NCBI RefSeq assembly: GCF_006345805.1
Contig: NC_043007.1
Coordinates: forward strand, 20,150,001 to 20,214,000
Origin: Octopus sinensis
Taxonomy: Eukaryota
Direction: 5' to 3'
Length of the DNA: 64,000 bases
The notes beneath the pieces were generated by a model. It searched no databases, was not told the origin of the DNA, and worked only from the letters and a program-made list of their open reading frames with translations. Position numbers and translations under genes: made by a program. Positions 33,201 through 36,200 of this stretch are shown here, in pieces. The number at the start of each line of letters is the position of its first letter. Within the stretch, counting starts at the first letter, position 1.

Positions 33201-36200
33201 AGCTGAGAATTGTGGGTGACTTTTGGGACAAGTTTTTGCAGTACAAGCAGAATCTTTGATCACTGGCCTGCGTTATCACAGATCAATCCGTGATAAACAT
33301 AACACGGGTCAGAACTAAGCATGTTTTATCCCAGATCAGTGATAAACGATCAGTGATAAACGAATCAGTGATCATCAAGGTTACATGTATTTGAAGCAAA
33401 CTAAAGTGAAATCAACATGGTTTTAATATGCAAACTATATTTTCTAACATGAGGATAATGCCTGTTATATCAATAAAACAAATATTATTATTAACGATTC
33501 TAGTAGGAAAATAAATATGTTTTAGTAACTTATAATCATGCAAAATGTCCAATATTTGAAATAACAATAACACTCACTCACCAAAACAAAGTCGTGTAGA
33601 GATTTATTAGTGAACTAGAATTGGTTAGGCATAATGGTTAGTGATATATATATATATATATACCGGAGTAAGCACATAAATAATGTGAAACAAGGTGGAA
33701 AAAAGAGTACTCAAATACCAGTGGTAGAGTAATATGCTTTATTTAAAAGCAGTAGAAATATAACAAAAACTGTTACTCAGAGTTTCCCGTTCCCGTTCGT
33801 CGGACAGTATCGTTAAAAAAACTGTCTGACGAACGGGAACATGAAACCCCGAGTAACAGGTTTTGTTATATTTCTACTGCTTTTAAATAAAGTATATATA
33901 TATATATATATATATATTCATTCACACAGTTAGTTACAGTTAAAGCAATTAGTAGGATTATTTAGCAGGTGTTAATTAATATAATGTCAGACAAAGTTTT
34001 ACAGCTGCTGCAGCTGAGGCTTTTATACAACTATTATAGCAATAAGATTCAGCATCATACACACACACACGCATATATAACTAAATTAAAATCCCAAACA
34101 GTCAAGTAAATAAATAAAAATCTACATTTATCTATTTGAAATGTTAGCAGCATGGATGTTAGTATGGCAACGAGAGGAGAATGGATATCTAGTACCTGCT
34201 CATGAGTCAGCCGCTGCTGTTCAGTAAAAGGTGGTTTGGATGGAAAGTTTCCAATATAAGAGGTTGGTTGAGGAGACTTGGAACTAGGTGACAAATTAGG
34301 TCCTGTCGCAGGGGGCCCTGCATTCCTGTTGCTATAGGGATCCTTTAGGTAAGAATACATTCACAGGAAAGGGAACACAAGGTCAGATAAAGGACATGCA
34401 GCATGCATTATACAATGAAATAAAAACAATATCATTCCAGAAAAATCAAACAAAATGAACATGCTAGGTTTTGATAGAGATGTTTTAGATTTCTTTTTTG
34501 AAGGTATTTTGAATTTCGCAATTATAAAATACACATTTTGTTTTAATTCAAAATTTGATAGCATTTTTGATACCAAACATGTGCATACAATTTGAGAATG
34601 TGAATAACAAATACACGATATTTCAAAAGAACAAAATGTACACAGTCTGTGCTAATGAGATAATGATATACAATTCCAGGTGTCACAAAACTGCAGCACT
34701 TAAAATATAATGAATATAACCAATGGATTTTTATAAGTGTACAAATGGAAGGAGAAATATCAATTTCAAATTATAGACTACGATGATGCAAATATAGGAA
34801 AAACTGAAATTAAATTACATATGCAGAGTAATTCAAAACGAAAGGTACAAAAAATGAAAACACACCTGTGAGTGTTATAATGAAAATATTGCAAAAATAT
34901 GGATGTAACATAAAAGTTTAACTCTCCAAGTTTTGTTTGGCCACACTGAAAATCTCGCCTCTATTATCATTGGAAACTCGAAGTGTTAACCTTTCATGTT
35001 ACATCTGCATTTTTGCAATATATTCATCACAACAGTCACATGTAGGTTTTTTTTTTTGTACCTTTCATTTTGGACTACCCTGTATTTCTAAATATATTTA
35101 TATGTTTTATCCCATAAATAATATATCACTATTAATATTATATTAATATGTTTGACCCTTTTGTTACTGACTCAGCCAAAACCGGCTCAGGCTCTGTAGT
35201 ACAAATGTCTTGTTTCCATAAGTTTTGAATTAAAATCTTCCACCAAACTTTAGTCACAATTTATGTTCCTAACACCAGCTGAATGATAACTAAGTTATTT
35301 TACTAAATTCTTTGTTATATTTAAAATAATTGAAAGAAACACAGAGCATCTCAAAATAAATATGGTAACGAAAGGGTTAAGAATCAGCAGAAGAGGTAAG
35401 AGGAGACCTCAATGTGGTCACTCTATATGCTAGAAATAATAGCCTAAATTTCCTTCAATCCACACCCTTCCAATTGCTTCTAATGTGCATCAGCCCAAAT
35501 ATAGAGGTGTGTTTAACCCTTTCAATACCAACCCGGTTCAAACTGCCTCTGGTTCTGTAGTACAAATGTCTTGTTTCCATAAGTTCTGAATTAAAATCTT
35601 CCACCAAAACTTAGTCACAATATATGTTCCTAACACTAGTTTAATGATAACAAAGTTATTTTACTAAATTCTTTGTTATATTTAAAATAATTGAAAGAAA
35701 CTCAGAGCATCTGAAATTGCTGAAACCAGTTCTGGCTCTGTAGTACAAATGTCTTGTTTCCATAAGTTCTGAATTAAAATCTTCCACCAAAACTTAGTCA
35801 CAATATATGTTCCTAACACTAGCTGAATGATAACAAAGTTATTTTACTAAATTCTTTGGTATATCTAAAATAATTGAAAGAAACACAGAGCACCTCAAAA
35901 TAAATACAATAACGAAAGGGCTAAATCCATGTAAGTAAACAATATCAATATTATAACCACATAGCTTTACTTGAGTGATTATCTCAATGGCATCAACCTA
36001 AAATGGTAATTGTGGGAGTAAATTCATGTGTAAAGTATTGAATACTGAAGGTAATGAATATAGAAACTAACGAAATAGGAAAATGGAAAAGCACATACAA
36101 ATACTAACAGCTAATTAACAAAGATTTTAAATATTTTGGATCACAAAAACAATGTATAGATTTCTTTAGATAGATAGGAAAATGTTTCCATCATAATTTT

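Follow-up and report, generated by a model that had tools for sequence, protein, structure and literature searches.

We analyzed a 64,000-nucleotide stretch of the Octopus sinensis genome (contig NC_043007.1, positions 20,150,001 to 20,214,000), here called the window, whose minus strand carries a gene for a group II p21-activated kinase (PAK, mbt-like) at 21000-56100, with introns of 1-11 kb. One of these introns harbors a near-perfect palindrome of 166 bases (33732-33897), and each of its two arms contains a sequence that resembles a minimal hammerhead ribozyme. An earlier note on this DNA, made from the letters alone, had read the arms as an inverted pair of hammerheads, one of them on the pre-mRNA strand, and had offered two possibilities: a disarmed insertion or a conditional intronic switch. 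We lean toward the view that the palindrome is what remains of a small, now dead retroelement that bore a minimal hammerhead-like motif, which the sequence comparisons below make fairly probable. Whichever origin is correct, the predicted structures suggest that the element very probably lacks ribozyme activity when part of the PAK transcript.

The palindrome lies in an intron of a group II PAK gene

The palindrome occupies nucleotides 298-463 of a host intron of ~4.25 kb (34195-29949). Its placement within PAK, as proposed in the earlier note, was borne out when we mapped the exon, donor, and acceptor on the minus strand and identified the gene as a group II PAK (Table 1). A protein search returned "PAK mbt-like" proteins of insect, barnacle, and snail as the closest named relatives, with kinase domains that were 83-86% identical. 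At the nearest retrievable orthologue loci, exon matches were 67-81% identical and the gene was compact, with the CRIB domain and the linker in one exon. Given that the gene structure of these relatives is different and compact, their loci were unusable for scoring the presence or absence of the repeat.

Table 1. Coordinates of the palindrome, the hammerhead-like motifs, the PAK exons, and the other repeats of the window. The solidus in a motif string follows H17.
Feature	Position	Strand	Basis or remark
Left arm of inverted repeat	33732-33808	-	Motif read on minus (pre-mRNA) strand; repeat search, arm alignment
Spacer ATCGTTAAAAAA, 12 nt, hairpin loop	33809-33820	.	Sequence, RNA fold
Right arm of inverted repeat	33821-33897	+	Repeat search, sequence, arm alignment
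Hammerhead-like motif with C4: ACUGU-CCGACGA-ACG-GGAA-CGG-GAAA-CUCUGAG-UA/ACAGU	33769-33808	-	Descriptor scan, one core mismatch
Hammerhead-like motif with full 11-nt core: CUGU-CUGACGA-ACG-GGAA-CAU-GAAA-CCCCGAG-UA/ACAG	33822-33859	+	Relaxed descriptor
AATAAA hexamer, outer (3') end of right arm, 1-2 nt ahead of (TA)n	33886-33891	+	Sequence
AATAAA mirror copy, outer end of left arm	33738-33743	-	Sequence
(TA)12 microsatellite, directly adjoining right arm	33893-33916	.	Sequence
(TA)9 microsatellite, 69 nt left of left arm	33645-33662	.	Sequence
69-nt single-copy stretch between (TA)9 and left arm	33663-33731	.	No other copy in window
Second, unrelated minimal hammerhead-like motif: GUUU-CCGAUGA-A-GAGC-UCC-GCUC-GAAA-CG-UU/AAAC	19752-19786	+	One-mismatch scan
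PAK coding exon ending ...RLTHEQ	34196-34342	-	Donor GT 34195-34194; acceptor position approximate
Next PAK exon, kinase-domain start (...GEGSTGIVC...)	29760-29948	-	Acceptor AG 29950-29949
PBD/CRIB exon of PAK	~55.8-56.1 kb	-	
Long low-complexity/disordered PAK exon	~45.8-46.6 kb	-	
Further PAK kinase exons	near 25.3, 23.7, 22.2, 21.1 kb	-	
Foldback repeat, nested palindrome of ~600 bp	3259-3862		Arms up to 98% complementary
Foldback repeat, 62-nt arms, 72-nt spacer	29225-29420		Arms 95%
Foldback repeat, 84-nt arms, 40-nt spacer	34850-35057		Arms 80%
Copies of SINE-like family	2784-3020, 27433-27744, 28769-28993, 43631-43942, 44182-44682, 49067-49282, 50039-50278, 51632-51844		
Copies of second short repeat family	166-495, 1264-1491, 5683-5919, 7148-7583, 9593-9835, 10292-10738, 24980-25216, 61755-61985		
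Inverted pair of another repeat, ~300 nt, 1.1-1.4 kb apart	39837-40143 and 41250-41553		92-94% complementary

Anatomy of the inverted repeat

A same-orientation alignment of the two 77-nt arms, which are 91% complementary, shows 7 differences over the 77 positions. Repeat search and alignment, together with the RNA fold described below, confirmed the inverted pair with 77-bp arms that had been noted at this position, and the fold (z = -18.7 versus shuffles) places the repeat well outside what chance would produce. We ruled out an assembly artifact, since a divergence of 9% between the arms argues against one and speaks for age. The truncation point is identical in the two arms.

The repeat forms part of a 230-nt insert (33663-33892) that is bracketed by (TA)9 on one side and (TA)12 on the other, and the 69-nt stretch that separates (TA)9 from the left arm may be a one-sided extension of this insert. 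Inspection of the sequence around the palindrome revealed no clear target-site duplication, only trivial matches of 1-2 nt in the TA-rich flanks. The AATAAA hexamers at the outer ends of the arms may mark the 3' end of a retroelement. As a separate observation, the minus-strand hexamer is sense to PAK and could serve as a cryptic intronic polyadenylation signal.

Each arm carries a hammerhead-like motif

The plus-strand motif, which is antisense to PAK, contains all of the conserved core bases (C3 U4 G5 A6 N7 G8 A9...G12 A13 A14 A15.1...U16.1 H17), with C3 at 33826, H17 at 33855, and a predicted cut at 33855/33856. The minus-strand motif, which lies on the pre-mRNA strand, has C in place of U at core position 4; its C3 is at 33803, its H17 is at 33774, and its predicted cut falls at 33774/33773. 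Stem I comprises 4-5 pairs, and helix III is reduced to one A-U pair and an insert of 7 nt. Stem II consists in each arm of 2 Watson-Crick pairs and one mismatch, which is C/A in the plus arm and, closing the stem, A/G in the minus arm; the 10.1-11.1 position is accordingly A-U in the former and A/G in the latter. Stems II of 2 bp occur in nature (PMC3088659). The helix III insert of the minus arm (CUCUGAG) is palindromic save for its center, that of the plus arm (CCCCGAG) is not, and the ancestral insert is ambiguous at one base.

The sequence and our descriptor scans agreed with the motif strings given in the earlier note for both arms. Its account of the minus-strand copy, with U4C and a 10.1/11.1 mismatch, was likewise recovered in a scan that allowed one mismatch, and its predicted cut was correctly placed. 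The distance of ~390 nt downstream of the exon donor was wrong, in that the predicted cut site lies 421 nt from the donor GT.

Hammerhead likeness relative to chance

We compared these motifs with chance expectation using a relaxed type I descriptor that required the full core, a stem I of at least 4 pairs, a stem II of at least 2 pairs with one mismatch, and A15.1...U16.1-H17 with 0-12 nt between. As duplicates of a single sequence, the arms were counted as one observation. The plus arm was the sole match in the window, where dinucleotide-matched random sequences gave an expectation of 0.075 matches per 64 kb. When one core mismatch was allowed, 2.8 chance matches were expected per window, and 4 unrelated matches were present. 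Rfam hammerhead families remained without a match, both in the whole window under the gathering score and across 33600-34000 at E<=10, although these models may miss motifs that lack helix III; the other Rfam matches were of the hairpin type and fell below threshold. Judged alone, the likeness to a hammerhead is barely above chance. The earlier description of a hammerhead in each arm therefore holds for the strings themselves, but not as a resemblance that exceeds chance on its own.

CpG-biased divergence and the probable ancestral core

Three of the 7 differences between the arms fall in CpG/TpG/CpA contexts: one at core position 4, one in the stem II C-G pair, and one in the helix III insert. 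Changes were ~14 times more frequent at CpG (3/10 CpG copies versus 4/134 other positions; Fisher p = 0.007), and the observed/expected ratio of CpG in the window is 0.55. Given that the difference at core position 4 sits in a CpG, CCGA (C4) is the most likely ancestral reading at the point when the motif was duplicated. With position 4 excluded from the rate estimates, the likelihood ratio for an ancestral CCGA over CUGA was ~17, an approximate value that rests on small numbers. The canonical CUGA of the plus arm probably arose later, through CpG deamination. The stem II C-G pair, by comparison, is probably ancestral, because the plus-arm difference there is a CpG-to-CpA change. The "intact ancestor" that had been proposed on the basis of the two stem II variants is thus reasonable with respect to this C-G pair, but it is unlikely to have had a CUGA core.

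We also considered strand-specific selection on the hairpin and rejected it, as the arm differences translate into 3 wobbles and 4 mismatches when one strand is folded and into 2 and 5 for the other.

A second C4 motif in the window

The one-mismatch scan also recovered a second, unrelated motif, which is antisense to PAK and has C at core position 4 as well. The minimal hammerheads of Penelope-like elements (PLEs) are characterized by an additional unpaired base between A9 and 10.1, by pairing of G10.1 with C11.1, by a helix II that spans ~4-8 bp, and by a palindromic 15.2-16.2/loop 3, with which helix III can form in a dimer (PMC4209133). The second motif carries an additional base behind A9 and pairs G10.1 with C11.1; its stem II is 4 bp long, and its helix III reads ACGU, a palindrome. 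It thus shows all three of the PLE features that concern the extra base, the 10.1-11.1 pair, and the length of helix II. It lies in a single-copy segment of 212 nt (19667-19878) that is bracketed by TA/TATG microsatellites. A stricter descriptor had an expectation of 0.12 chance matches per window, and the interval 19680-19880 yielded no Rfam hammerhead match at E<=10.

CCGANGA strings occur at six places in the window (18943+, 19756+, 45045+, 46002-, 33803-, and 7237-). Two of the six stand in a full hammerhead context, compared with 1/32 of the CTGANGA strings, and that one is the plus arm, itself a copy of one of the two CCGANGA loci with a full context. The background rate of a full context is ~0.003 per box occurrence, U4C accounted for 0/163 simulated one-mismatch matches, and there were no CCGA-type matches in 210 kb of unrelated real DNA drawn from the relatives' loci. 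The binomial probability of this enrichment is ~1.5e-4, or ~5e-3 when 30 possible single-base variants are allowed for. In addition, stretches flanked by two TA runs that are <=300 nt apart make up only 1.8% of the window, and both of the independent hammerhead-like loci fall inside them. Taken together, the C4 enrichment and the TA bracketing are suggestive of a real motif class.

This raises the potential that the palindrome and the 19752-19786 motif belong to a lineage-specific family of minimal hammerheads with a native CCGA core, carried by retroelements that target TA microsatellites. We consider such a family unlikely on present sequence comparisons. A C4 core might still work when dimerized or assisted by host factors, and deamination at one CpG turns it into the canonical core. 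C4 is absent from the natural core variants described in the accessible part of Perreault et al. 2011.

Origin of the palindrome

The origin that we favor begins with the insertion of a small retroelement, now old and non-functional, into a TA microsatellite. The palindrome would consist of two 5'-truncated copies of the 3' end of this element, placed head to head, and each 77-nt copy would carry AATAAA and a TA run at its end and a minimal type I motif ~37 nt from that end. The motif would have read CCGA when it was duplicated, and the CUGA in the antisense (plus) arm would reflect later CpG deamination. Such an arrangement would be the one described for PLEs and their non-autonomous derivatives, and we infer a PLE-type origin. 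PLEs are known for heavy 5' truncation, inverted truncated copies that form inverted repeats, a bias toward (TA)n targets, a one-sided tail, and hammerheads (PMC8557442), and an earlier study described minimal hammerheads in pairs, with the two motifs on opposite strands and separated by 100-700 bp (PMC4209133). In vitro, a purified PLE protein cuts both strands of DNA and extends them (PMC11167929), and this activity on both strands could provide a route to two outward-facing 3' ends. The AATAAA and TA ends, the TA bracketing, and the second C4 motif together point to a relic of the PLE kind over pure coincidence, and we file the motif as a probable, degenerate member of the PLE minimal hammerheads.

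Several of our results weigh against this origin. The arms neither pair G10.1 with C11.1 nor insert a base behind A9, and their helix II falls short of 4-8 bp; they also had no Rfam hammerhead match at either cutoff (gathering score; E<=10). The window contains no other copies of the arms, as judged by 3-mismatch patterns and word-7 blastn. Searches of viral, metagenome, and prokaryote collections brought up no further copies of the arms, all of the matches being due to chance: the core 18-mer occurred in 36 metagenome stretches and 1 viral stretch of GC-rich, prokaryote-like DNA with similarity limited to the 18-mer, while the 3'-end 20-mer occurred by chance in 14 bacterial contigs and in 0 viral sequences. 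No remnant of a reverse transcriptase or GIY-YIG domain was present among the open reading frames (ORFs) of >=70 aa in the window. The tests of C4 enrichment and of TA bracketing were framed post hoc and concern two loci only. Finally, a foldback DNA element could likewise account for the shared end point of the arms, and the window holds at least 3 other foldback repeats.

Alternatively, the palindrome could be a foldback DNA element of the miniature inverted-repeat transposable element (MITE) kind, or a local inverted duplication, without any ribozyme ancestry. Its likeness to a hammerhead would then be coincidental and sharpened, in one of the arms, by a CpG-to-TpG change. We regard this as possible but doubtful. 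The shared end point of the arms, the missing Rfam match, the other palindromic elements (3259-3862, 29225-29420, and 34850-35057), and the probable absence of U4 from the ancestor all speak for this reading, and the descriptor expectations given above (0.075 per window, or 2.8 with one mismatch and four unrelated matches found) leave room for coincidence; however, there is no clear target-site duplication, and the outer ends, with AATAAA beside a TA run, are retroelement-like. Coincidence must also account for a full context at 2/6 CCGANGA strings, with helix III inserts that are palindromic or nearly so and with TA bracketing, which is unlikely by chance, though this test was made post hoc.

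Folding and activity in the PAK transcript

On either strand the two motifs point outward, and the hammerhead-sense arm is transcribed second, 12 nt after its own antisense. Given this order, the RNA is predicted to fold as a 77-bp hairpin instead of a hammerhead. The hammerhead secondary structure had a predicted energy of +7.4 kcal/mol in the plus arm and +2.3 kcal/mol in the minus arm, and the best folds of the isolated arms reached -14.7 and -15.1 kcal/mol. The hairpin formed by the whole palindrome, in comparison, was predicted at -105.9 kcal/mol on the pre-mRNA strand and -104.4 kcal/mol on the opposite strand, and a 231-nt context fold gave -117.6 kcal/mol (z = -18.7 versus shuffles). 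The suggestion in the earlier note that the upstream antisense arm could sequester the minus-strand copy is consistent with the predicted fold.

Helix III poses a further obstacle. Minimal hammerheads need a second sense copy to build this helix (PMC4209133; PMC6765202). Any one transcript of the palindrome holds one sense and one antisense copy, with the partner motif on the opposite strand; with helix III reduced to one pair, dimer formation would call for another sense copy, which this RNA lacks. A comprehensive scan of single and double mutants of a hammerhead found low activity for every change in the CUGA turn, apart from a C3/G8 swap (PMC9901934).

On the retroelement reading, a transcript of either strand would zip into an imperfect 77-bp hairpin and no hammerhead would form, leaving in PAK pre-mRNA an inert intronic hairpin that is at most a substrate for double-stranded-RNA enzymes. 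From these predictions we infer the absence of cleavage, and cleavage of PAK pre-mRNA by the element appears very unlikely. Of the two possibilities offered at the outset, the disarmed insertion is supported, whereas the conditional intronic switch is not, given C4, the weak stem II, and a predicted +2.3 kcal/mol for the hammerhead versus -105.9 kcal/mol for the hairpin.

It is also conceivable that the hairpin itself, whatever its origin, is a functional unit that undergoes small-RNA processing or editing by adenosine deaminases. The near-perfect 77-bp stem with its 12-nt loop would suit such a role, and several Rfam models of microRNA precursors matched below threshold (e.g., mir-24 with 35 bits against a cutoff of 50). 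These matches were all under the gathering score and are generic for hairpins, however, and the stem is much longer than those of animal microRNA precursors. With wobbles and mismatches balanced between the strands and nothing to suggest selection on the RNA, we give this role only a slim chance.

Most improbable of all is a working conditional ribozyme in which the minus copy cuts nascent PAK RNA at 33774/33773 when the antisense arm is blocked: its sense orientation, 421 nt into the intron, and the existence of conserved intronic hammerheads in amniotes (PMC6155905) are countered by a C4 core in a CUGA turn that tolerates no single change (PMC9901934), by a stem II of two pairs and an A/G mismatch, by a partner arm that is transcribed first, by the absence of a second sense copy, by neutral-looking, CpG-biased divergence with wobble pairs that favor neither strand, and by the reported depletion of hammerhead retrozymes from introns (bioRxiv 10.64898/2026.07.22.740005). 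Such a switch would require all three of a hairpin held open, a partner in trans, and a crippled core that works.

Other repeats in the window

Besides the palindrome, the window contains three foldback repeats that look like MITE-type elements, as well as an inverted pair of another repeat (Table 1). Copies of a family that resembles short interspersed elements (SINE-like; body ...GTGGATTTGGTAGACGGAAACTGAAAGAAGCC...) terminate in compound (TA)n(TG/CA)n microsatellites, and TA runs are often retroposon tails in this genome. A second abundant short repeat family, marked by a spurious ORF string, is present in both orientations and forms several long inverted pairs, such as the one at 9296-10653.

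Implications and comparison with known systems

If the palindrome is indeed a retroelement remnant, it joins the many thousands of decayed, hammerhead-bearing relics already known from the genomes of invertebrates. Overall the finding is ordinary, and the recurrent C4 variant, with two unrelated motifs in 64 kb, is its sole point of wider interest. Should the recurrence of CCGA hold genome-wide and the variant cleave, the range of core variants known from natural hammerheads would widen. On the retroelement reading, the palindrome also illustrates that a textbook-perfect ribozyme core can arise by CpG decay in a dead copy, which calls for caution in motif-based annotation of ribozymes.

Among known systems, the minimal hammerheads of PLEs (PMC4209133; PMC8557442) share with the palindrome a type I arrangement, a short stem I, and a one-pair helix III with a near-palindromic insert. 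They too occur in short truncated copies, sometimes with two motifs on opposite strands, in inverted repeats, and at (TA)n targets, and their in vitro activity is low or absent. The palindrome differs in that its stem II has 2-3 pairs with A-U or A/G closure and no extra base after A9, in that its presumed ancestor had C4, and in that no PLE reading frame or pseudo-long terminal repeat (pLTR) lies nearby. Foldback MITEs are similarly short, non-coding, and almost fully palindromic, and the setting in an AT-rich intron, with similar palindromes elsewhere in the window, would suit them. Unlike such elements, the palindrome has no recognizable target-site duplication and no second copy in 64 kb, and its ends carry AATAAA and TA.

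The conserved intronic hammerheads of amniotes (PMC6155905) resemble the palindrome in that a sense-oriented motif lies inside an intron of a protein-coding gene. Those ribozymes, however, are canonical type I hammerheads with intact cores and loop-loop contacts that are conserved across vertebrate classes, whereas the palindrome has a core change, weak stems, no Rfam match, and its own antisense partner.

The non-LTR (long terminal repeat) retrozymes of animals and the Sm-alpha-type hammerhead repeats of Schistosoma (PMC7229834; bioRxiv 10.64898/2026.07.22.740005) are likewise small, non-autonomous, and PLE-linked, and, as in the palindrome motif, their short helix III implies action as a dimer. 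Retrozymes are built as direct tandem repeats of 170-400 bp and give rise to circular RNAs, in contrast to the two inverted 77-nt copies of the palindrome, which cannot form a same-strand dimer. A preprint reports a depletion of hammerhead retrozymes from the introns of vertebrates (bioRxiv 10.64898/2026.07.22.740005), which agrees with the idea that an intronic sense copy, such as the one in PAK, would survive only if harmless.

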